From contig CAJFCJ010000005.1 of assembly GCA_904063045.1 (NCBI GenBank), forward strand, positions 181,310 through 245,309: 64,000 nucleotides of DNA. Reading direction: 5' to 3'. The position numbers were made by a program, and so were the translations under genes. Position 1 is the first letter of the stretch, and every line of letters starts with the position of its first letter. Below, in pieces: positions 615 to 18,300 of the stretch. The notes below the pieces were generated by a model. That model was not told the DNA's origin. It saw only the letters and a program-made list of their open reading frames with translations, and searched no databases. The DNA comes from Dimorphilus gyrociliatus. Its lineage: Eukaryota > Animalia > Annelida.

Positions 615-1738
615 ATGGAAAATATTTCACACTTCATTAGCTCTTTTCAGACATAAATTGTATCGTAGTTACACTCAAGGGATTTATATAAATGTCTATC
701 TATTAATATATTTGACAATTGTTCATCAAACTAAATTCTATAAATTATATGTCAATGTATTTATTTTCTAGAACAAAGTCCAAGGGATTTCCTCTGCAGA
801 GAAGTTTCAAAATATGGACTTGACATATTGAATACTCCGATTTGTATAGCCAAACTGCAGCACTTGAACACAACACAGGAAGATTTTATTCAAGAATTTG
901 ATCAGGATGCTGTAGTATTTCGCAATGAATATAAAGCAAAGACTAACAAACTCTTGAATCAGTCTTCTTCAGTATTCCTTATATGTACCATACAAACCAT
1001 TGGAGAACGGAATTTGCTGCTGATTTATGTCACTATTCCTCGATGCCAAACAAGCATACAGCGTCTCTTTGATGTTCGACTTCTAAGAAGCAGCGATAAT
1101 ATAACTCAAGTGGTTCAAGGAAGCATACATCCAATATACAAAAAAGTTATTGGCTATACAGTTCTCGGGAATAAACATTCAAAATCAATCATCGCTTGCT
1201 GTACGTTGATATCAAAATGAAACTGGAATATAATTTTTACGTTGATATTATTAATATTCCCAGCCTCCGTCTATATGACTTAAATACACATTTAGAGAAA
1301 AAATGGGACATAAGTGAACCTAAATATTTTAAAGGGGATAAGCTGTTTATAAACACATTCGCCGATCATATCAATGAAGCTCAAAAGTATAATGACGAAT
1401 TCTTGAGAAACTGGAAGAATGAAAACAGATCAACATTAAGAGTTATAGAGAAAGTATCAGAAGTATACTCCAGAATTTTAGACAGCAATCAACTGCAATA
1501 TTTTATTGAAAATATTGATAATATACGGTCGAAATTCCCGAATAAAATGTTTGAGATGTGCTATTCAGTATTAGAGGAAGATTTTAGCACTTTAGCGGAG
1601 TTGTGTGACAAGAACCCTAGGATTCCGTTTGGGGTTCGGCTAATGCCTCTATGTAATGTTGAACACTTGTTCTCATCGCAGATGATTGAAGGAGATAGGG
1701 AATTATTAACCTTCATAAAGTTTAAATATGGAGCATAA
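615..1738 (+). pseudogene. Unknown family, copy 1 (frameshifted)
   Basis: ORFs 828..1220 and 1196..1738 together match the continuous 318-aa ORF 12345..13301, so there is a frameshift near 1190-1200. Splice acceptor TTTTCTAG ends at 771. A decayed first exon (ATG GAA AAT, MENI) starts at 615 and has an early stop. Confidence 0.75.
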
Positions 1739-1760
1739 TGCTGTATATCAAGGGCATTGA

Positions 1761-3171
1761 ACAAAGTGTGTTGTTATGTCTCGACTCCGCCCTCTTACTT
1801 GCCAGTCCAAAGAAAAAAAAGACTTATTAATATTTCTCTCCTAAGAGTGGGCTCCATTTCACTTCACATTAACAACTGTACTTTCCTTCCGTAGAGTTGT
1901 CGATAAGTACTGTACACGACAAAATTATAGGATTGAGGAGGTTGTATGCATACCCTTTGCCTTTTTTATTGCATTTAGCCTTCTTTCAAAATAAAAGAAC
2001 TTGAAAATGTTGTTTTCTTTTTATTAATAAAATTAAAAATATAATAAATTTGAAAAGTTGAACTAAGAACTAACATCTAAGACTTTGCAGATTTATAGAA
2101 ATCTTTATCTGATATCTCTTCAAATTTTTTGTATTTTCTAAGACAAGATCAGCTTCTCTTTTTAACTCGTCTAAAAGATTCTAAAATGATTTTGCTGTTT
2201 CCAGCACTTACATTTAACCTGTTTTGAAATCCTTCCACACCATTGTAGGCTCTTATGGCAACATCAAAAACAGACCATAATGAGCATGGCTATATTCTGT
2301 TTTAATTGCTTGGCCATTGCAAAAATTAACACTATTTCATTTTGATGTAATAAGTCACATTGGAGGAAGCCATCGGCAATAAAAGAATGATTATGTATAA
2401 ACGCCAAAGATTCTGCTTCTTTTGGTCGATTTTTCCCTCTGCAATAATTAACAACCTGCTTTCAAATTGTAATTTTTGGAAAATTTGAACTTTATTCACA
2501 TTGAAACTTGTTCAAGTAATTAAAAAGACAAAGAACTATTACGATGTAATCTATAGTTCATATACAGTATATACTGATTATATTAGTATATTGATAAGTA
2601 TGATTAATAATAATTCAAATGTCATATTTTTTAATTTTCGACTAGTAACTTTCACAAAAAGGCAACATGATTCCAAATGCTGTTAAGGTTGAGTTCATTG
2701 TTCAGTGTTGGCTGTTGCCAAGAACCTTGTTGAAGATCAGTTCTTCTACGATAACAAAACGATATAATTTACTGTATGTAACCGTATCAAACGGTTGCTG
2801 TATTCTAATTGACTACTAATTGGTATCGATATAATCACGTGTGGATACACTTGATTACGTAACTACGAGATTGCATCTCGCGGTGAACGATTTCGAGATT
2901 TAACACTTTGTATACATAAATATATATATATATTGCCCCCAACCGTAATACTACATTTAACTCTGGAGATCTTGGAAGTTCTCCAACAAACCTAATAACG
3001 GGATGACAAAATAAAAAAGAACACAGTAGGTAAAACGCGATTCTAAAACAGTATACAAAGTACTGAACAAAACAAATTTGATTAATTATAAAATACTTCC
3101 AAATTAACAAGTTTCAGTGTTTTTTTGCTGGCAAGTAAAAGGGCGGAGCCGAGGCACAACAACACACTGTG
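1761..3171 (-). mobile_element. Mutator-like (MULE) transposon remnant with ~45-bp terminal inverted repeats
   Basis: 1761..1805 (ACAAAGTGTGTTGTTATGTCTCGACTCCGCCCTCTTACTTGCCAG) is an inverted near-copy of 3127..3171. Minus-strand translation of ~2220-2460 gives FLQCDLLHQNEIVLIFAMAKQL and WSVFDVAIRAYNGVEGFQN, resembling MULE transposase motifs, with stops and frameshifts. No clear TSD. Confidence 0.5.
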
Positions 3172-3243
3172 TATGTAAGGATTCAGCTATTCAGAAGAGA
3201 ACTTGTCAAGTGTATATCTCAGTTGGCTCTCAAGAACATTTTA

Positions 3244-4371
3244 TTATTGTTCGTTGGCCGAGAGATCTGAGAAAAAATACTGTTCGGTTAATTTGAACTC
3301 TTCCGGACTGTTGAACGACATTAGATTTATTGCTCGATCTCTATTCATGTACGGAGGTCGAAATGGCAACCATGGATATGTTCTGCATAATTCTTCGTAC
3401 ATCCCCCAGTTTTCATCAGACAAAAATTGCAGTGTCTCCTCAAAATACCCGTTTTGCGTTGTCAATTGTTGACGGATATTTGGTATATTCTCCACAAAAT
3501 ATCCCAACTTATTTTGTCTATAGGCTTCAGTATAGACGTGTGATATGTTTATCAAGATCTCAATCAGACCCATATATTTTTTGATTAGTGCAGTAATGAC
3601 TGAATCAATACTATCCCGAATTTGTATCAGATAGTTACCCAATTCCTGAATGTAGTATCGATGTCCTGGAGAGAGCTGTGGTTCGGGTATGTTTAATTCC
3701 CTCTTTGCATATATGTAGAGTGTTTCTAAAGAATTTCCAAATGTGTTTTTATCAATGTCCCTCATTAAACAGCAACTAAGAGGGACAATTAGATCAACCT
3801 TTGGAAAGTGACGAGTATCAAAATCCAAATCTCTATCGCCAAATGTAGAGATACCTACTACATTGAGAGTGATGTTTTCCCTATCGAGCAGGCTCATCAA
3901 GTACTCGAACGTTATTTGTTTTTGTTCTTTAACCTCAACCTCGATGAGGTAACTTGTTCTATGATTCTCACCCAAATTTGTACAACACCCGAACAAGCGA
4001 AATAGACATTTCGTGCTGTGTCTTTCAATAGAACATTGTAAAAATATTTTTCCACATTTTCCGAAGGTTTGTTCCCTTAGCTGTTGAATTTTATTGAAAC
4101 GTTCAATTGTCTTTTCATAAAAATGCCGCTCAAAGTCATTTCTTATTCTTAAAGTATCAAGATAAACTGCATCCTTAGACAAACATCTTTCCAACTTTAA
4201 ACCTTTCGAAATTTTTATTTCGAACAAGGCTTTTAATACATTAACATGTAGGTCAGAAAAGAGATGAGACATTTCTTCGCAGGGTTTAATATATGCATAT
4301 ATAAATGCGCGTGCGCAATAAGAAAAACCACGAACCCTGATAAATTTATCGAAATATTTTTTTCGTAACAT
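3244..4371 (-). CDS. Unknown family, divergent intact copy 2 (375 aa)
   Basis: Open 375-aa ORF that aligns by eye along most of its length with the 12345..13301 protein (RNDFERHFYEKTIERFNK vs QEDFIQRFYQHAIQFYNK; NKLGYFVENIPNIR vs NQLQYLIENIDNIR; ELCRTYPWLPF vs ELCDKNPWIPF). Confidence 0.8.
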   Translation of the reverse strand: MLRKKYFDKFIRVRGFSYCARAFIYAYIKPCEEMSHLFSDLHVNVLKALFEIKISKGLKLERCLSKDAVYLDTLRIRNDFERHFYEKTIERFNKIQQLREQTFGKCGKIFLQCSIERHSTKCLFRLFGCCTNLGENHRTSYLIEVEVKEQKQITFEYLMSLLDRENITLNVVGISTFGDRDLDFDTRHFPKVDLIVPLSCCLMRDIDKNTFGNSLETLYIYAKRELNIPEPQLSPGHRYYIQELGNYLIQIRDSIDSVITALIKKYMGLIEILINISHVYTEAYRQNKLGYFVENIPNIRQQLTTQNGYFEETLQFLSDENWGMYEELCRTYPWLPFRPPYMNRDRAINLMSFNSPEEFKLTEQYFFSDLSANEQ

Positions 4372-5589
4372 AATAAAAAAAATAATAAACTAATTAAAAT
4401 AATTAATTAAAGTAATTATTTTTAAGTTTTTTCAACCTTTACGCAAGTTGATATCAAAATGGCTACTCGCCGACAATACAAAATGTCTGCCAACCCGCTC
4501 TACATATACTGTATATATTTTGCTTGAACTGAGAAGAAAATTAATCTTTTTCTAGTTTTTAGAGTCATGTGATAATGTTAACTGTTGTAGAATCTTATAA
4601 TATCAGTCATGGTAACAATTTCAATCAAAAGCGAAAAGTCTTTAAAACTAATTCAATTTTTATATTTTTCAGCGAGAAATTCGATGAGCGAGAGACAGAG
4701 ACAGAGACAGAGAGATAGAGAGAAAAAAATGTGAGAAATACCGCTGATATCGTAAAATGAATACAGTTAACTGAAGAGAGGGAGAGGGTTGGAATGATAC
4801 TTTAACGATACCTTCCAATGTCATTCCATTGCCGAAAGTAGAATATCCACATTTTTATACACCTATTTTATATATTCTCATCAAGTTTATTGGTCTTTTA
4901 ACTATCAAATTAACATGGTCTTTCCTAAATAGAAATATCATAAAAACTGCCACGAATATCAAAGTTTTCTGTGGAATATTCCATATCATTCAATAAAGAG
5001 ATTTCTAAAGCATATTTTAATGAATGATTTAACAAGCAATCCACCAACCACCAACAGAAAAGTCTGTCTATTAAATACTTCTATTTTATTCATATTGATC
5101 ACTTCTTTTTTAGTCATATTTTTCGCGCAAAAAGTAGTCCTATAATTTTCCTTTAATTATATATAAAGTTACATTGATCTGTTCAACGTACACCTTTTTT
5201 CAATAATTTTTACTTTCCATTTGTCTTGAGCCTAGAAAAAGACGTTTTATGTGTTTGCTGTGACGAAAATGTGCTGGTTGAAAGATAAGATTAAATCCTA
5301 CGAAGATTCTTCGATCATAAAGATTTTGAAAAGAGAAACTTTGAAGCAAATCGAGGCGAAGAGTTGAAAATGATGATTTTCAACAGTGTTTCGAAGAATG
5401 TAAAAAGTCTGTTACTTGTGCTCTTACATCTGTTTTTAAATAGCTTCTAATAGTGGTCTAATAGCGATTAAATGGCGTGTTTTCTTCATATTGTAATAGA
5501 TAGATCCTTGATAGTCTCGATATCTCGTGATTCCATTCATCGTTGGTCCTTTCTGGTGTAAACTGCCGCTACAGCTTCATGTTCATAAC

Positions 5590-6706
5590 CTTGGATTTAA
5601 CATATTGAATAGTATGATTCCTATAGCTAAATTGCAACGCTTGATCATGACAAAGGAAATTTTATTCAGCGTCTTTTTGATGTTCGACTTTTAAGAAGAA
5701 ACGATGAGGTAACTCAAGTGATCAAAACGACGTTTACTGACAATAGCCATTGTGTAACGTTTGGAGGTCGACTAGTATCGCTTTGTGAAGTAAAAGACTT
5801 ATTCTGATCTGCGAGCAATTAATCAGATGTGGTATTATTAATCATCGTAACGTTCAAATATGCTAACAAACTTTCGCATTATATTGTGAATACATCATCT
5901 TACCTACTTGCCAAAAAACTGTAAAAAGTGATTAGCATGAAATTCTTTAACAATTCGAAAGATTGATATTATGGATTGAGAATCTATTGTATATTATCTG
6001 ATTATCAGCCATGTCTAGCCATCAAATTTGTTTGGTCGTTAACTTGTATACTGTACTAATATTATTGTCTTTTATATACTGTATTATTTCTTAGTTCGTC
6101 AATCCAAATCGGGTGCTGGACACCGCTCAACGCTGAATGACAAACTTAACCTTGGATTTGGATTTGGAATCGTTTGATATCATTATCAAACTGGAATATG
6201 CTTTTTGTGTTGATATTATTAATATTCCCAGCCTCTGTCTAAATGACTTATACACACATTTAGAGAACAAATGGGGCATAAGTGAACCTGCATACTTTAA
6301 AGGAGATCACCTGTTTATAAACACATTCACTAATTATATCAATGAAGCTCAAAAGTATGATGATAAATTTTTGAGAAACTGGAAGAACGAAAACAGGTTA
6401 GCAATAATAGTCATACAGCAAGTGTCGGAAGAATACTCCACAATTTTAGACAGCAATCAACTGCAATATTTTATTAAAAATATTGATGATATACGATCGA
6501 AATTGCCGCATAAAATGTTCCAGAACTGATATTCAGTATTAAAGGAAGACTTTAGCACTTAAACGGAGTTGTGTGAGAAGAATCCTTGGATTCCGTTTGG
6601 GGTTCGGCTAATGCCTCTATGTTATGTTGAGCATTTGTTCTCATTACAGATGGGTGAAGAAGATAGGGAATTATTAATTTTTATAAAGTTTAAATATGAA
6701 GCCTGA
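5590..6706 (+). pseudogene. Unknown family, copy 3 (deleted, interrupted, internal stops)
   Basis: 5590-5730 carries N-terminal fragments (AKLQR, IQRLFDVRLLRRND). An unrelated ~420-bp insert follows, then ORF 6137..6529 and further homologous sequence with stops, ending FIKFKYEA* at 6706. Confidence 0.75.
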
Positions 6707-7013
6707 TACTATTCTCTATAGTATTATACAGATATAGATTCCATATTTTTGGTTGTGTGACAATAACTAAGTGATAATGTTAAGATACTTACGACAATGG
6801 CCAAAACAACAGCAGTTGGAAATTCATGGGACCAAAGGATTTATTTCGTAGGTTTTCGTTAAGGGCCGTTAGATACTTGGCGAAACACTAGCACCGAAAT
6901 CGGCGAAGTAGCCAAAGGTGGAGAACCCTCTGGTCTATGGCATAGCAGGTAGTCCACTTTAAGTTATCGGATGTAATATTGAAGATAACAATTATATTGA
7001 ACGTTCAAAAATC

Positions 7014-7870
7014 ATGAATGAAAATATCAATTTTACTAAAATGCATGGTCTTGGAGATGATTTTATTATTGTTGAATTCGATAATCTTGAAGAGAATCAA
7101 TTAGATTATAGTTCGTTAGCTGTTCAAGTATGTGATAGAAAGTTTGGAATTGGTGCCGACGGATTAATTATTGCTAATCCACCAGAAATGAAATTAATAC
7201 AGTTTCAAATGCTAGTTGGAGAATATTTAATTCTGACGGTAGTGAACCCGAAATGTGCGGAAATGGTATTAGATGCTTTTCAAAATATCTCTTCTCAAAG
7301 GATAATACCAAGTACAGGAAACTGTTGATTAATACTCTTTCCGGTGTAATTCTATGGGAAATTTTAGACGATGGACAAATTAGGGTGGACATGGGTCCGC
7401 CTATTTTACAATCATCCAACGTTCAAGCAGAAGTTTTAAGGACAAATATAAAAATAAAGGATAAAGAATTTCCAATCAATTTGATCAGCATGGGAAATCC
7501 TCATTGCGTAATTTTCACCAAAGAGGATACTGATAGTCTTGCTATTGAATATGGTCCAAAAATAGAATGTCATAGTATTTTTCCATTGAAAACAAATGTA
7601 GAATTCGTTAATATAATTTCGAATAATCGTAGTAAAATAAGTATTTGGGAAAGAGGTTGCGGTATTACAATGGCTTGCGGTACAGGAGCTTGCGCATCAG
7701 TTGTAGCAGCAGTTTTAAATAAATTAACAGAAGAATCGGTAATTGTTGATTTACCAGGTGGTCAATTAAAAATTGATTGGAATGGTTGTGAAAATTCAAG
7801 TGTCTTTATGACCGGAAATGCTGAATTTGTATGTTTCCGTAAGTATTCCATATTAAACGTAAAAACCTAA
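7014..7870 (+). pseudogene. dapF: Bacterial-type diaminopimelate epimerase, split by a single -1 frameshift
   Basis: Motifs FTKMHGLGDDF, CDRKFGIGADG, RIFNSDGSEPEMCGNGIRC, SMGNPHCV, NVEFV, WERGCGITMACGTGACA; both catalytic Cys are present. Adding one A to the run at 7186-7188 joins ORFs 7014..7328 and 7253..7870 into 285 aa. No introns. Confidence 0.93.
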
Positions 7871-8544
7871 TAAAATATCAAAGATATTAGAAATATTTAG
7901 TCATTTGAAAATTATTCAAATTTCATTCAAATTTCTTGGATAAAAATGTCAGATTGATTGAATTATTTTCTTTTCCTACCGTTAGATATTTGCTATTGTT
8001 TGTGTTTGTTCCTTGCAATGCCAACGCCATAAATAGTACAGTATATATTATTGTAGAATAAATTTCATTTATACAGTTGAACAAGAATGCTTTTCACTAA
8101 TACATTAAGAACAAATAAACAAAAATACGACGTATTGAATGATGCTCTCTCTTTTGTCTATTTTCAATCATTCAATAAATTGGTTACGAGTGAATAATTC
8201 AATAATAACTGTTTTTACTGTCATTTTCACCATTAACATTTATATCTTAATTTTTGTTGTTTTACTACTCAGAATTAACTGATTTGTTAGAGAGAAACTG
8301 AAATTAGAATGTTGAAAGATACTGCCACTTCTTCGTGTTAAAACTTATTAATTAATAAAGAACTTCAAAGTCTAAAATTATGAAATGTTTTGTGTTGTTA
8401 ATAGTAAATAAATTGTATATAGTATAAATACGGCTCAAGTTTATGAATAATGAAAATGGTAGGGAAGAAATCAATAAATGAATTGATTTTCTTTGTTTTT
8501 TCGTGGAATACTATAAATACCTGAAGAATTACGATCAGAAATAT

Positions 8545-10262
8545 CTAATTGAATGAAAAAACATGTTTGAATAATAAATTAACTAGTATCCTGAAATACA
8601 AACTAGTAAATTGAAGGCCAAAAATGTCTATATCTTTTATGATTATATCCTGATTAGCTAGTAAACTTATCTTAGTGATGTTCAACTGTTGAAATGAATC
8701 GCAAACAGTTTGAGCTCTTCTTGTTATTACGGATAAATTAAAGCATATTTCAATATCATTTCCGGAAAAAACGCAAGCTTTGATCTCCTTCCCTTTTTGT
8801 ACAGTAGCAGTTGTGTCTAGAGAAGAAAGTTCAAAAGTCAGTGTTTCTCTCAAATGATTAACTTTTATATATAAATATACATGTAACGCATATTGTATCA
8901 ATGTAGTCTACATTAATGTTGAGTGTTAATTCGTCATCTTTTGTCAATGAAATACTAAAGGTTCCTGATATTTGTACATTATTCTTGTAAAACGAATAAA
9001 TTCCATGAGATTTTTCAATCTTGACATCTATTGGACAATTGACTATTGTAAAATGAAATGAAAAAAGATAATGTTTAAAAGTCTACTTACCGTTCATTAA
9101 AGTTGTATTCGTAATGTTCCTATTATAAATTACCACTTCGGATGTAGATATAAAATTCGATCCAGAGCCATATGATGTTGAATGTGGCCGAAAGAGAACA
9201 TATCTTCCAATAAGTGATTTATTATTATGTATGACAAACGTCTCCCAAATCAATTCAGTAGAAACTTGAACTTCTGAAATTAATTTGCATTGAGGTGATT
9301 CTAAAGAATCGGAAATATCGTTTAAAAACACTTCAATATGAGATGCGACGCTTGCTGAAAATAGGTAGTAGATATATAATAAAGGGTACAGAATATTTTA
9401 ATCTATAAAAGGAAAAAAGTATAATTACAAATGCCTCTTGCTCTGGTCATTACAATTGTTTCAATTTGATATAAATTCAACATATCAATTCTCAAAAATG
9501 CTCCTACATTTTGTAAAGTGGAACTCTTTAAAAAGCTACTAAAGTTCTCATCATAAAGCTTTGATATTAGTATATCATTCTCGTTTGTGTAGAGAAATAC
9601 CTTACTTGTAGCCATTTGAAATATAACATTATCTATAAACAAATATTAAGGAGGATCTTTGGTACTAGCTTTATTTTGTCTCTTACCATCTTCTTTGATG
9701 AAAGTTCCTCTAATTCTTATTATAGAAATTGCCAGTATATTTATATTTATCTTTTGAACCCTTAGAAATCTTCCAGTGCAACTGCAATTCTTACAAAAGA
9801 AATTTTCAGGATTGTTTGCTGCCTGCTGTGGAATGAGTGATGTTTGTTGAAAGCATAATTGTCCTCCGATTAGCAACTTAGTTTCTGTATAAACTTCAAA
9901 CATGTCAAGATTACCTGTAAAAATATGATTACTTATATGTTATTGATTTTAATAGGCAATCAAAGATTATAGTCTTTACTTGCGCTATCTCCATTAATTA
10001 CGCAAACTTCTGTTATCGTGTATAGTCCTTGAAGGTCAACAGCCCACCAAGGACGGTTCGAGTAATCTACTATAGACTTTGCAGTTTTAAAGATGGCATC
10101 CATCAAAGCTCTACTGGCATTATTATTCTTAACAGCAGTGACTTGTTGGTATGCTGGACGATTCGTTGCAATATTATCTTCAATAGAAATATAACAAAAA
10201 CTAAAAGATAAATATACAACAACCAATTGAATTGTTATAAGAAGATGATGTTCTAATTTCAT
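8545..10262 (-). CDS. Secreted multi-exon protein with tandem F-type-lectin/F5-8C-like domains
   Basis: Hydrophobic N-terminus, then NIATNRPAYQQ...ASRALMD...RPWWAVDLQGLYTITEV (fucolectin-type) and further discoidin-like segments in ORFs 9646..9903, 9403..9642, 9083..9331 and 8545..8901. The 3' end is uncertain. Confidence 0.65.
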
Positions 10263-11104
10263 CCTTATAATCTATTGAAATTGTTGGAAAGGGAAAGAGT
10301 TGGACAATACAAGTTGAACATTTATAAACTGTTCAGTAATAATAAAGAAAAAAACATAGTTTCTCAATATAAATAGACTAACGAAATGTATCGATTCATT
10401 TATGTAAATACATATGTTTTTTATATACATAGTTGTCATGATAGAACATATACAACACACAAAGTATCATCAAATAAAGTTATTATAATCCTTTTAAGAT
10501 AATCATTAGTTTAAATACGATAGCTTCAATAGATTTTATAGAAAGTTTATTGAATATCTAAATGGCAATGAGATTAGAAACAATGCGAGAAATATGTCTT
10601 TCCATGTATTCTATTCGCTAAACACATTATATCAACTTCCTTCTCATATGAAGATCTCTTTTATGACCGTGCAAAGCAATGTCTTCACGGAACACGTATC
10701 ATATGACTGACGACACAGCGTCCGGTGAATTTTTTATGAAGGTTTCTGCTCTGGTCGCGAGCTCCACGTAGTTGAACACCTCCACTTTTGCTGTTTAGAT
10801 TAAGTAGGATTGATTGTTCAGAATTCCGTACATTCTTTTGCAACTGTGTTTCTGATATTGAGGGCAGTTTGTCTATTACTTTTCACCTGGTGGTTGCTTC
10901 ATTTAATACCCAGAATTTCTACAAGAGCCTCGCTAACCCTGCATAGTACTTTGTTTCAAGTAGGTCCTTCACTAAGGGATATCCTACATTCAATTTCCTA
11001 TCTAGTGGCAGAGGGCTTTGCTTGTCCTGGTGTGCCTTCAACTTTCTAAGTTGTACGTTCATCACCTCTTCAACCTATATAATTGCATATTTGCTATCCT
11101 CCTA

Positions 11105-11940
11105 GGAGGATAAACAGCTTATCTCCTTTAAAGTATGCAGGTTCACTTATACCCCATTTGTTCGCTAAATGTGTATGTAAGTCATTTAGACGGAGGCTGG
11201 GAATATTCATAATATCAATGTAACAAGCATATTCCAGTTTCATTATTATATGCTAAGTAAGCGATCATTGATTTTAAAATGCTTATTTCCGAGGATTGTG
11301 TATCCGATAACTTGACGCATTATTGGATTATCGTTTCTTTAATGACCTGAGTTATATCATCGCTTCTACTTAGAAGTCGAACATCAAAGAGACGCTGTAT
11401 GCTTGTTTGACATCGATGAATAAAGACATAAATCAGTAGTAAGTCCTCTTCTTCATTGGTTTGTATGGAAAATATGAGAAATACTCTTGGAGAATGATTC
11501 AAGAGTTTTTTAGTTTTTGATTTATATTCATTATGGGATGTTTCAACATCTTGATTACATTTTCGAATAAAATCTTTGCGTGTCGTTTTCAAGTATTGCA
11601 ACTTTTCTATAAAGATCTCAATATTCAATACGTTAGGTCCATATTCCAATGCTTCTCTGAAGAGAAAATCCTTTGGGCTTTCTTCTGAAAAATTGACAAG
11701 ATGAATGTATAATACGCTATTTGGGTTAGGATTAAATATCAAATTTTCTATTCTGCTAAATTCCTGCCAATTTCGCGTATAAAATTATCACTTATCGAAT
11801 TTCTATTTAGAACAATAAATAGACAAAAATGACCTGTTTCTTCATAAGGGAAAGACACTTGGTCCACTTTTACAGATGATGCCAAGTTAATAGCTGATAT
11901 TGTATTTATAGAACGAGGTTTTTATTTTGTCCATGATAGA
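11105..11940 (-). pseudogene. Unknown family, copy 4 (truncated)
   Basis: ORF 11320..11742 is homologous to the N-terminal half. 11105-11250 encodes MKLEYACYIDIMNIPSLRLNDL...FKGDKLFI and then stops abruptly. The first-exon remnant at ~11830-11940 is frameshifted. Confidence 0.75.
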
Positions 11941-12344
11941 GAAGGTTATCTTAGACAAGCCTCGACAGTAACCAGTGGATGATCCAGAAAAACGGTTGTT
12001 GATGCCAAATATCATTGGATGGAAAGAGAAAGAGTGGACACCGAGTGGGAAATATTTATGACAATGAGAGCATTTGAAGAAATAGCGAAGAAAGATGTAA
12101 ATTAAAGGTGTAAAACATCCGGACACCGTAAATTTTGATATGCCAATTTTTAAAACACTCCAAAAATGTTATCTTTGTTTTAGATGAGAAAAGAGTTATG
12201 AAATACTGAAAAAAAAAACTAGAGCGAATTATCAGGAAAATATTTTTTATTAATTTTCATTGTTTTTTTCTTTATCCGAACGTCGTTCACCGTTGATCGC
12301 TAACAAGCATCCAGGTGTGGGATGACGAACTATGACTTATAGTA

Positions 12345-13543
12345 TTATGCTCCATATTTAAACTTTATGAAGGTTAATAATTCCCTATCTTCTTCACTCA
12401 TCTGTAATGAGAACAAGTGTTCAACATTACATAGAGGCATTAGCCGAACCCCAAACGGAATCCAAGGGTTCTTGTCACACAACTCCGCTAAAGCGCTAAA
12501 ATCTTCCTCTAATGCTGAATAGCACATCTCAAACATTTTATTCGGGAATTTCGACCGTATATTATCAATATTTTCAATTAAATATTGCAGTTGATTGCTG
12601 TCTAGAATTTTGGAGTATTCGTTTGACACTTCCTTTATAATTCCAATTGTTGATCTGTTCTTACATTCCCACCTTTTCAAGAATTCGTCAGGATACTTAC
12701 AAGCTTCATTGATATAGTCGGCGAATGTTTTTATAAACAGCTTATCTCCTTTAAAATATTTAGGTCTTTTTATGTCCCATTTCTTCTCTAAATGTGTGTA
12801 TAAGTCATTTAGACGGAGGCTGGGAATACTCATAATATCTGAATAGAAAGCAGATGGCAGTTTCATTATGATATCAACATACGGCAAGTGATCAATGGCT
12901 TTAAAATGAGTACTTCCAAGGATTGTATAGCCAATAATTTTATTGTATATTGGATATATACATCGTCTTATAATTTGAGTTATATCATCGTTTCTTCTTA
13001 GAAGTCGAACATGAAAAAGACGCTGTAAACACGTTTGCCTTTGAGGAATAGTGACATAAATGAGTAGCAAATCCCGTTCTCCAATGGTTTGTATGGCACA
13101 TACAAGAAACACTTGATGTGAACTACTCAAAAGTTGTTCCGTCTCTGATTTATATTTATTATAGAATTGAATAGCATGTTGATAAAAGCGTTGAATGAAA
13201 TCTTCCTGTGTCGTGTTCAAGTGTTGCAACGTTACTATACAAATCAGAGTATTCAATATGCGAAATCCAAATGTTAAAACTTTTCTCAAGAGGAAATTCA
13301 ATGGGGTTTGTTCTGGAGAATCAAATGCAGTATTTGAAATATAGATCAGTTTTTATTCTTAAACATATAAAGAGTAATACAGTAGTATAGATTTGATAAA
13401 ATGAGATAGTTGATTTTATGGAATTTTCTACTCTACTAAATTGATTAAACAATAAATAAACAAAAATGACCTATTTCGCCGTTAGGGTAAGATACTTGAT
13501 TCACTCTCACATATGAACCAGTAGAGTTTTCCATATTTTCCAT
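12345..13543 (-). CDS. Unknown family, intact two-exon copy 5 (~346 aa)
   Basis: Exon 1 is 13543..13471 (MENMENSTGSYVRVNQVSYPNGEI, phase 1, GT donor); intron 13470..13313; exon 2 is 13312..12345, in frame with the 318-aa ORF. The acceptor position matches copies 1 and 4, and the donor matches copy 4. Confidence 0.8.
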
Positions 13544-14382
13544 AACAAACTTTCAGATCAGAATTCCTAATTTAACAGCATGTAAAATGCACTGACTCCG
13601 AGTTCATCTCAAAATAGATACAAGCTTATCAACATATTCTTATCCTATAAAAAAAATAGGTGTACAAGCTTGTTGATTTTCTTAAGAAAACACAAGTTTT
13701 TCTTTGTTATAACCAAAATTGAAGATTAAGGAGGAACACATTGAGAAATTACAAATAAAAATTGTTATCAGCAAGACAATTGTCTTGACAGTTTACTAAT
13801 TTGTCCTCAGAACTTTATCATATATAACTTTTTTTATCTACTGTATATGCGAGATGACGTGTTATAGTGAAATTTGAAAGTTAAGGAAACAAAATTTGGA
13901 AAATTGTGGAAAAGTATTTCTACATTCATTAATGTATGTTTTTAATAAGGATAAAACTATAAAAATTCATTCAAATACTTGAACAAGTTTCAATTAATAT
14001 TAGCTTGAAATTTGTCTAATTATTAATTTAAGATTTAATAAAGATAATATAATAATCGTTTAGGTTAATGGGATTGCAATCTTCCTAAAATATAAACCTA
14101 ACAAAGTAAGAGACAAAGATAAGATAATAGACGAAATCTTCAGAGCTAGTCTTACTACGTAGAGGTGGGTACAATCTGAAGTTGATAGGAGTTTCTTTTT
14201 TTTACTTTGCTATTGTAGGAGGTTACATGAAATCTGTGGCACAGTCTTGGAATTGACTAATAGATTGACCAGTTCGGCAATCTGGTGAGTTAGCCATTCT
14301 ATATAATATAGGATCTTTAGGGGAGATGTTTTTCTAAAAGGTCAATACAGCTATAATTTATGACGTATACCACTGCACCATT

Positions 14383-14790
14383 TAAGTTCGTCATTCCGGT
14401 GTCCGGCACCCGATTTGGGTTGACGAACTAAGAAATAATACAGTATATAAAAGACAATAATATTAGTACAGTATACAAGTTAACGACCAAACAAATTTGA
14501 TGGCTAGACATGGCTGATAATCAGATAATATACAATAAATTCTCAATCCATAATATCAATCTTTCGAATTGTTAAAGAATTTCATGCTAATCACTTTTTA
14601 CAGTTTTTTGGCAAGTAAGTAAGATGATGTATTCACAATATAATGCGAAAGTTTGTTCAGTATATTTGATTAAATGCTTGAAGATCAGAATAAGTCTTTT
14701 ACTTTACACAGAGATATTGGTTGACCTCCAAACATTACACAATGGCTATTGTCACAAAACCACGTTTTGATCACTTGACTTATATCATCG
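14383..14790 (-). repeat. Inverted copy of 5700..6148
   Basis: Reverse complement matches the insert in copy 3, including the adjacent family fragment (DDISQVIKT) and the GTTCGTCA...TGACGAAC mini inverted repeat. Confidence 0.85.
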
Positions 14791-15386: not shown

Positions 15387-18300
15387 TTAATGAATGTTCA
15401 AAGATTGAATACTTTTTCCAATTGCTTGAATTTTTATGTTTTCAATTACATTTTCTCTATAAAAACCAAAAATTATTCAATAAATATTAAATAAGGGGAA
15501 AAAACGTACTTTTGCAGTTTAATATTTTGCAGTCTTTGTTTATTTAACCTTACAGTTTCTTTTAGGAAAAAAAAACAACAGCAATAGGTGGAATTAATTG
15601 GTAGAATTAGTATAGAAAACCACGAATAGACTACTTTAACGTCGGTTGATAGTTGAAATGAATCGATAACATCTAAAACCACAAAATATATATATATATA
15701 TAGATAGCATTAATAGCAAGTTTGTGTAATGAACGATTCTATTAACGAATTATAAGGAAATTAGTCCAAATGAAGAGGTTAATAACGGCCGAAAAGAATG
15801 TTTGATATACAAAGTTTTCGTCGTATAACTCGGAAAAGTCTATGTCGAATCGAGACGCTTTGTATTTGCTGAGTAGAACCAATATAAAAACATTTGGGAA
15901 GACGACTAAAGTGATGAAAAAGTATACAAATTTACTGTTGCTTATAGATGAATTTCCGAAATAGTTTGTTAAGAAACAACTCGAATAACTAGATTCATAG
16001 GCCTAATTAAAAATGATGAGATTATTAACGCATTTCACCTATTGATTATATAATAATTACGTTCTCTTTCAACGTAAAAGAATATATTAGAAATCCTCCA
16101 ATAAAGCATAATTTCAGTATATAAAGATATTTCAGTTTTCCAGAAAAGAAACTCTTTGTATTGGATGCCGAATTGATTAATTTAAATATTGTTATCAATA
16201 GACTAGTATAGGATGAACCGAGAAATGAAAAACTATTGAATATTGCCGCTAATTTACACCGGAAACTATTTAACCATTGAGTTTGTTTATATATATAATC
16301 GTCACCAATTTCAATATGGAAACTAACTATAATTAAACTATGAAAGATAAGTAAAAACTGGTAAAAGATTAATGAAAATAATAGAAATTTATAAAAGTTC
16401 TTGTAGAATTTTCTCATCCAAAAAAAGGTGAATAAACTCGTAACGAAGATTAGTAGAAAGTAAATAATAATTACAACTAATTTAATATTTGTTAAATATC
16501 TTGAACAGTAGTTTAAATCCTTGTTTGAACGACCTTGATAATGACAATTTGTATTTAATAAATAAGTTGAACAGCAGATGAAAAATTCATTAGTAAATAT
16601 TTGTTTAATCTTTTGATAACCTTGAAATATATTAAATTTTTCAATTGACCTAAATTCTGTTGAATTTAAATGAAGATTTTGTAAATTAAGTAAATAATTC
16701 AAGTCATTTTTTCCAAATGTTAAAATAATTGAATGAATAATTTGTAAATTCCTTAAATTTTTCAAATTAATGAATGAATCATTCATTAATTGTAATTCCA
16801 TAAAAGATAATTGTAATGTAAGTAGTGAAGAGAGATGTTGAAATGTCTTATCAATTATACGAATTGGAAGTTTCTCCAATTTAAGGAATTGAAGTTTCTT
16901 CATATTTTGAAAGGTTGTTGAATTAATATCATTTAAAATTGTATTAGATATTTCCAGAATAGCCAGATTAGAGAATTCTTTAATTTTATCGCTTGACCTC
17001 AATTTACAATTTGAACAGTTAAAAAGAATTATATGAATATTTGAAATCTGTTTTAAAAGCTCTTCCGGTCTATTAACATCAATTAATCGAAGACTTTTTA
17101 CAATAATTTCCCGTTCAATTTTTTCCCTAAAACTTGATTGAAAATTGCATAAAATCTCGTATCTTTCTTGACAAACGCAACTTTTCGGGCAAGTAAAGAA
17201 TTTTTTACAATATAACTCATCGTCGCCGCGTTTACAGTTGATGACGTCATCGCAAACATTATTAAGATATATGTAATTAGAATTTTGACATTTGAATTGG
17301 CCAATAGGAAAGAATTTGTCTTTTGATAATTAATTAATTAATACGTTACGAAGGGTAAGTATTATAAATTTTTGGATAATTGAGAAAACGTCAGCAAACG
17401 TTGACGTTTTAACCCTAACCCTAACGTTTTCTCTCACTCCTAAAAAAAGGATTTAAATTCATACCGCAATCAATTTCATCGTCGCCAAATGGACAATGTT
17501 TTATTCCATCGCAAAATTGATAGATTTTTATACAATAATCCAAATATAGACATTGAAAAGTTCCTTTTGAACATGTCTGTTTACATTTACTCAATTGTAA
17601 ATAAGGAGGATGCACTTTCGTTAAAAGTCTTCCAATAGATGAATAGCTAAGATGACAGAGGTATTGATTTGTGAGAGTTTCATACGCGTGTCCTATATTG
17701 TAACAATCGTTAATTTCTTGTATTGCTTTGTTGAATTATTTTAGAATAGTTTTAAGAAGAAATTAAAAACACTTGAATATAAAATTATATATATATATAT
17801 ATATATGTTAAACTTAGGCCTTCTTCATATGCTAAACAATAAATATTTTCATCTTCGGACGATGAACAATCAATTTTTAAATCGCAGTAAAAATGATTTG
17901 AAAGACATTTTGAATCGCAATTCATAAAATTTCTGTGTTTACAATCCTCTAATAAAATGTTTAAATAGAGTTTTATATTGAAATTTAAAAGTTAAAGTTT
18001 ACCTCGATCACAAATTTCATCACTTTGATCAAAACAATTAATTACACTGTTACAAGTTGACGTTTTATCAATACATTGTCCACTTGCGCATTGAAATTTT
18101 GCTGTATTTTCGCAACTTTCATAGACTAGACGTTTTAAAGGTAAATTATTATTAATTATTAAATTTATTAATTAATTAATTACCGCAATTCTCTTCATCT
18201 TTTCCATTTGAACAATCATTTCTAGAATCGCAGAGAAATTTTACCAATACTTTCTCTGTGGTACTACATAAGAAATAATGAAAATTATTGCATTCAATTT

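Follow-up and report, generated by a model that had tools for sequence, protein, structure and literature searches.

A bacterial diaminopimelate epimerase gene in the annelid Dimorphilus gyrociliatus: probable transfer from a Melainabacteria-type donor, and signs of decay

What is a gene of the bacterial diaminopimelate (DAP) pathway doing among animal genes, and does it still encode a working enzyme? The question is raised by a short segment of a stretch of 64,000 nucleotides from Dimorphilus gyrociliatus, here called the window. It is well established that animals lack the DAP pathway. Its epimerase, DapF, interconverts LL-DAP and meso-DAP, and this enzyme alone is useless to an animal unless meso-DAP gets further use. 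A sequence-only reading of the window had proposed that the gene, dapF, came from a bacterium by horizontal transfer, and had left two alternatives for its present state: a decaying insertion, or an intact gene with a sequencing error.

A DapF coding sequence in two frames

Positions 7014-7870 (+) carry a full-length diaminopimelate epimerase coding sequence split over two reading frames. The N-terminal piece, at 7014-7187 (+), is read in the frame of position 7014 as 58 amino acids, MNENINFTKMHGLGDDF...GADGLIIANPPE: it matches positions 1-51 of TIGR00652, the NCBIfam equivalog model for DapF, with an E-value of 2e-11, and Pfam DAP_epimerase (PF01678) with an E-value of 3.7e-7. The C-terminal piece, at 7190-7870 (+), lies in a second frame that is open from 7178 and ends with a TAA at 7868-7870; it matches positions 55-264 of TIGR00652 with 217.9 bits, for a cut-off of 114.65 bits. 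On the gene as a whole, the Pfam domain scores 159 bits in two stretches (E-value 5.8e-47). The full-length DapF announced by the sequence-only reading is thus borne out by the matches of both pieces to the two models. Neither piece has an internal stop codon, and the assembly has no uninterrupted reading frame: the break is at 7185-7194.

Aligned to bacterial DapF and to the nearest solved structures, the Arabidopsis chloroplast DapF (PDB 3ejx) and 9mro, the C-terminal piece displays the binding motifs NSDGS, GNPH, TNVEF and ERG. Both catalytic cysteines (Cys73 and Cys217 in the numbering of H. influenzae) are present in invariant columns, one in EMCGNG, at codon 7256-7258, and the other in ACGTG, at codon 7676-7678. 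Five of the six substrate-binding residues have their equivalent (Asn64, Asn157, Asn190, Glu208 and Arg209), the sixth, Asn11, being replaced by Asp; the alignment shows the equivalents of Asn66, Asn164, Asn197, Glu215 and Arg216 intact.

The break itself is a perfect tandem duplication of five nucleotides, GAAAT/GAAAT, whose copies at 7185-7189 and 7190-7194 (+) can be read directly in the sequence, GAAATGAAAT, and which shifts the frame 58 codons into the gene. It is the sole 5-nt tandem repeat of this kind within dapF; such repeats cover 0.25% of the positions of the window, and the chance of one falling within the frame-switch interval of about 12 nucleotides is approximately 0.03. With one copy omitted, the protein reads ...NPPEINTVSNASWRIFNSDG... 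and aligns without a gap to the bacterial ...NPQEIKADTDTSWRIFNSDG...; the loop from GxDGx to NSDG is then 19 residues long, the most common length in the donor clade (76 of 124 sequences). The sequence-only reading had placed a frameshift of one nucleotide in the A run at 7186-7188, and had given a repaired protein of 285 amino acids. That length holds under the 1-nt model only, with a loop of 21 residues that is found in one sequence of 124; omitting one GAAAT copy yields a read-through of 283 amino acids, and both claims are corrected accordingly.

Does the duplication belong to the worm, or to the assembly? The duplication, both junctions and the coverage are those of the published assembly, which is based on PacBio RS II and was polished with Quiver and Pilon. 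A duplication of five nucleotides by slippage is a normal mutation and not a typical long-read error, and a 5-nt assembly error that survived this polishing is unlikely: the frameshift is thus probably real. Of the two alternatives for the state of the gene, the decaying insertion is therefore favoured and the sequencing error disfavoured, since a GAAAT duplication is not a homopolymer slip and the assembly is polished.

Origin of the gene and its surroundings

The best database match of the protein is the public entry for the locus itself, DgyrCDS3188, to which we return below. The next 119 of the best 120 matches are bacterial DapF, at 49-60% identity, the nearest bacterium standing at 57-60%; the named ones among the best 120 belong to Melainabacteria or Gastranaerophilales, and no metazoan protein other than DgyrCDS3188 is found among them. 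Melainabacteria, or Vampirovibrionia, are the non-photosynthetic sister group of Cyanobacteria.

Plant and insect DapF were left out of the trees. In a tree of 102 rows, the worm protein, read with an X at the break, belongs to a clade of 37 rows (SH-aLRT 99) that takes in all rows of Melainabacteria, Gastranaerophilales and Vampirovibrio. A more careful tree of 58 rows gives a Melainabacteria clade of 24 rows with support 100/100, and places the worm protein within it, in a subclade of 13 rows with sequences of the GWF2_32_7 type (94/93). Next to it, photosynthetic Cyanobacteria and Negativicutes make up a group of their own. The phylogeny that the sequence-only reading had called for thus nests the protein within a bacterial clade; the cyanobacterial or Terrabacteria affinity that it had seen by eye was close, but the donor clade is that of Melainabacteria, with Cyanobacteria standing apart. 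On these trees, the donor is a Melainabacteria/Vampirovibrionia-type bacterium.

The worm copy has much in common with the DapF of Melainabacteria and Gastranaerophilales, for example that of Candidatus Melainabacteria bacterium GWF2_32_7: a common length, the two-domain DAP_epimerase architecture, 54-60% identity, the active-site motifs Pro-Glu-Met-Cys-Gly-Asn-Gly and Ala-Cys-Gly-Thr-Gly and, once one GAAAT copy is omitted, the loop length. Unlike them, it is frameshifted, has an Asp for an invariant Asn and a 6-residue loop deletion, and its terminal branch exceeds the median by a factor of two to three; it also sits in animal DNA, without the neighbours rpsF-ssb-rpsR. In the closest Melainabacteria-type contigs (4247-6213; 6001-7920), dapF is directly upstream of this conserved operon, with rpsF about 135 bp downstream, and none of these genes is in the window. 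This synteny is a marker that could help to recognise the donor lineage.

The host scaffold, CAJFCJ010000005.1 of assembly GCA_904063045.1, is 4.55 Mb long, and the window contains no N. Upstream of dapF, positions 6137-6712 (+) hold a member of a host-specific multi-copy family that is truncated and interrupted; the public set annotates no gene there. This copy shares 86.6% identity with 1206-1742 and 83.4% with 12339-12877. Its similarity ends at 6706-6712, that is, 302-307 bp 5' of the ATG, in agreement with the host-family pseudogene that had been reported some 300 bp away. Downstream, an annotated host gene of 470 amino acids occupies 8471-10262 (-) in the public gene table: it contains introns, is convergent with dapF, and its end at 8471 is 600 bp past the dapF stop. 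The sequence-only reading had seen here an intron-containing lectin gene at about 700 bp; the gene is confirmed, at the distance just given, but the lectin label is weak, the discoidin signal being a faint match of one exon to F5_F8_type_C_2 (E-value 0.0026, Pfam search exon by exon). At the level of the assembly, dapF is physically linked to host genes, in a scaffold of 4.5 Mb and with host paralogue DNA 302 bp upstream.

The upstream family has no Pfam match; its copies, with 83-87% DNA identity, are found at 828-1738, 3244-4371, 6137-6706, 11320-11742 and 12345-13301, over a span of 615-13543. A 150-nt inverted repeat with 92% identity, at 6000-6149 and 14382-14522, has family copies immediately downstream; it may be a small repeat element, or else belong to the unit that was duplicated. 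Further along, at 16046-17002 (-), a long ORF has leucine-rich repeats (LRR_8, E-value 1.6e-6) and, after them, hydrophobic stretches that resemble membrane segments. It has the appearance of an exon from a receptor with such repeats, which would confirm that animal-type genes are nearby.

How far does the bacterial DNA extend? When the flanks are compared by tblastx to 80 bacterial loci, similarity is limited to approximately 6990-7870, and no remnant of bacterial neighbour genes is found; the flanks have no Rfam or tRNA match either. There is no paralogous empty site to define the ends of the insert, the similarity of the family copy to its paralogues stopping at 6712. A direct repeat at 6853-6879 and 7966-7992 (74% alike, with an exact core of 10 nucleotides) was considered as a target-site duplication and rejected, since a repeat like this is expected by chance in 3 kb. 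Base composition was also discarded as a means to tell host from donor: the G+C content of the donor clade, 31-39%, is as low as that of the host.

The horizontal transfer proposed by the sequence-only reading is well supported, because the protein is nested among bacteria at 100/100, nothing but the ORF is bacterial, host paralogue DNA lies about 300 bp away, and the scaffold is 4.5 Mb long. On the evidence of the assembly, we hold it very probable that the dapF of D. gyrociliatus stems from a genuine transfer from a bacterium to an animal.

Decay, constraint and the public gene model

The GAT codon at 7056-7058 (+) encodes an Asp in place of an invariant Asn (Asn11 in H. influenzae, Asn13 in Anabaena, Asn15 here), in a column that contains N in 197 of 197 homologues: the Asn-to-Asp change that had been noticed in the motif MHGLGDDF is real. 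In the enzymes of H. influenzae and Anabaena, the side chain of this Asn forms a hydrogen bond with the reactive alpha-amine of DAP (PMC8225329, PMC12039745); with an Asp, a hydrogen bond to the substrate amine could still be possible. The worm gene also departs from the consensus at 5 of the 62 columns with a conservation of 97% or more in the donor clade, where the clade median is 0 and the 95th percentile 1, and at 4 of the 58 columns conserved over all 199 homologues, where the median is again 0. Its terminal branch measures 0.68-0.72 in the two trees, against a median of 0.25-0.31. The other 57 of the 62 clade-conserved positions are intact, including both catalytic cysteines, and a working gene would fit this count too.

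A simple simulation of neutral evolution, started from dapF with one GAAAT copy omitted, leaves the frame without a stop in about 20% of trials at approximately 8% amino-acid drift, and in 2% at approximately 19%. A brief period of neutral evolution since arrival thus fits the data. However, neutral drift in the worm cannot account for the distance of about 40% to all bacterial DapF known so far. This distance must have been built up under selection, be it in a donor lineage that has not been sampled or in the worm, during a functional phase. Because the rest of the frame has stayed open and no other catalytic residue has been lost, we infer that the inactivation is recent, or that only a short drift followed arrival.

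The locus is already annotated, as DgyrCDS3188 (CAD5114034.1, UniProt A0A7I8VHI9), with a DAP_epimerase domain. The window and the public locus are base-for-base identical over the 18.3 kb compared, and the exons 7041-7238, 7301-7838 and 8273-8301 translate exactly to the public protein; for this identity check they were joined by script, and the joined sequence was kept out of all searches. The model takes the second Met (7041) as its start and reads 17 out-of-frame codons in the first frame before its first intron, 62 nucleotides long, at 7239-7300 (+). This intron, GTAGTG...AAAG, has a weak donor and restores the DapF frame; it removes the active-site segment with the equivalents of Asn66 and Cys75, deleting WRIFNSDGSEPEMCGNGIRCFSKYLFSK and with it the first catalytic Cys. 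It is probably a work-around of the gene predictor for the frameshift, and likely an annotation artefact. The 3' intron, of 434 nucleotides at 7839-8272 (+), has the consensus GTAAGT...CAG and is followed by a terminal exon of 9 codons (8273-8301). Since PASA evidence was given weight 10 in the annotation, there could be a real transcript behind this second intron. No independent copy of the locus came to light: the ORFs of 205 and 104 amino acids were not found by exact look-up in an assembly collection, and a word search gave no near-identical fragment of the 104-aa ORF. Nor does a collection of 5.8 billion proteins, which seems to be without read-level calls for the species, hold an intact full-length version.

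Three other explanations compete with that of a young pseudogene. According to one of them, dapF is whole and functional, with the extra GAAAT as an assembly error or a variant of the haplotype sequenced, and it converts dietary or microbial LL-DAP into meso-DAP, from which a separately acquired LysA produces lysine. A frame open on both sides of a single break, the conservation of both catalytic cysteines and of the equivalents of Asn66, Asn164, Asn197, Glu215 and Arg216, and an assembly based on PacBio RS II all agree with such a gene. On the other hand, a perfect 5-nt tandem duplication in an assembly polished with Quiver and Pilon is unlike the typical long-read error of one nucleotide, an invariant Asn is replaced, conserved sites have changed in excess, the branch is long, and the protein collection, with the reservation just stated, offers no intact version: we regard a working gene as unlikely. 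It could also be supposed that DgyrCDS3188 is expressed and spliced as annotated, into a protein of the DapF fold that lacks the first catalytic Cys and is non-enzymatic or has a different role. Its introns of 62 and 434 nucleotides are of the GT-AG type, the 3' intron has the consensus donor GTAAGT, transcript alignments weighed heavily in the annotation, and the size of the shorter intron matches the species median of 66 bp reported in the genome paper. Yet that intron has the weak donor GTAGTG and begins 17 codons past the loss of DapF homology; out-of-frame filler and deleted core strands are what a predictor produces in order to keep a frame open, and the spliced product appears quite improbable.

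There is finally the possibility that dapF is not in the worm at all, but in a bacterial contaminant that a chimeric read or a mis-assembly has fused to host DNA. The donor clade has a G+C content as low as that of the host, so filters of the Blobtools type, based on composition, would be blind to it. The scenario requires, however, two chimeric junctions within 300-600 bp of a gene of 857 bp, in a long-read contig inside a 4.5-Mb scaffold and in a window without N; no bacterial gene is found next to dapF, though its relatives carry rpsF 135 bp downstream; and an essential gene in a living bacterium would not be expected to carry a frameshift and to have lost an invariant residue. We give this explanation very little credit.

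The young pseudogene remains the explanation that we prefer. A single dapF would have passed from a Melainabacteria/Vampirovibrionia-type bacterium to the nuclear genome of D. gyrociliatus, and would have been inserted between a copy of the host-specific family and the host discoidin-like gene. The 5-bp tandem duplication would then have disabled it, along with the loss of the invariant Asn and the excess of changes at conserved sites, and it would now be decaying. Taken as a whole, the statement that a Melainabacteria-type dapF was transferred and is now a young pseudogene seems to us rather probable, with less assurance than the transfer itself.

Known transfers of dapF and what the worm copy may mean

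A transferred dapF is a textbook element of the metabolic patchwork between sap-feeding insects and their symbionts. The gene was transferred to the mealybug Planococcus citri and to the whitefly Bemisia tabaci, alongside a transferred lysA, and serves there in endosymbiont-linked synthesis of lysine and peptidoglycan (PMC6838666, PMC8659303, PMC4607527): these are transfers in sap-feeding insects, of the kind that the sequence-only reading had pointed to. Like these insects, the worm has a dapF of bacterial origin in its nuclear genome. In the insects, however, the gene is intact, expressed in bacteriocytes and complements obligate endosymbionts, whereas the worm copy is broken, belongs to an annelid that lives freely and is not known to have an endosymbiont, and has Melainabacteria as its donor clade. 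The choanoflagellate Salpingoeca rosetta also has dapF among its candidate transfers (PMC7971027). The resemblance lies in a bacterial-type dapF in a bacterivorous holozoan without a full, vertically inherited DAP pathway; the difference is that the host is another one and not an animal, the event independent, and the candidate reported as intact.

Our literature search brought up no publication that deals with dapF in Dimorphilus or in any annelid. In the genome paper, horizontal transfer appears only in the reference list, and the accessible part of its supplements makes no mention of dapF. What is new is the annelid host group, the unusual donor and the decaying copy, a transfer from a bacterium to an animal being in itself fairly ordinary. 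For users of the databases, DgyrCDS3188 merits a flag, its first intron being probably an artefact that masks a frameshift.

A gene caught in mid-decay illustrates the birth and death of genes transferred into animals. It is tempting to go one step further. Meso-DAP is the common isomer of bacterial cell walls, and the direct substrate of LysA. A bacteria-eating annelid without endosymbionts may have gained the last two steps of lysine synthesis, with dapF from Melainabacteria and lysA from Bacteroidota, and used them to salvage lysine from the DAP in the walls of the bacteria that it eats; since meso-DAP feeds LysA directly, dapF would be dispensable, and would now be in the process of being lost. 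This scenario is a tentative one, and we consider it doubtful. If it is true, genes of the DAP pathway acquired by transfer would here serve nutrition outside the setting of insects and their symbionts; it also suggests an idea that can be tested: small bacterivores may harvest lysine from the cell-wall diaminopimelate of bacteria.
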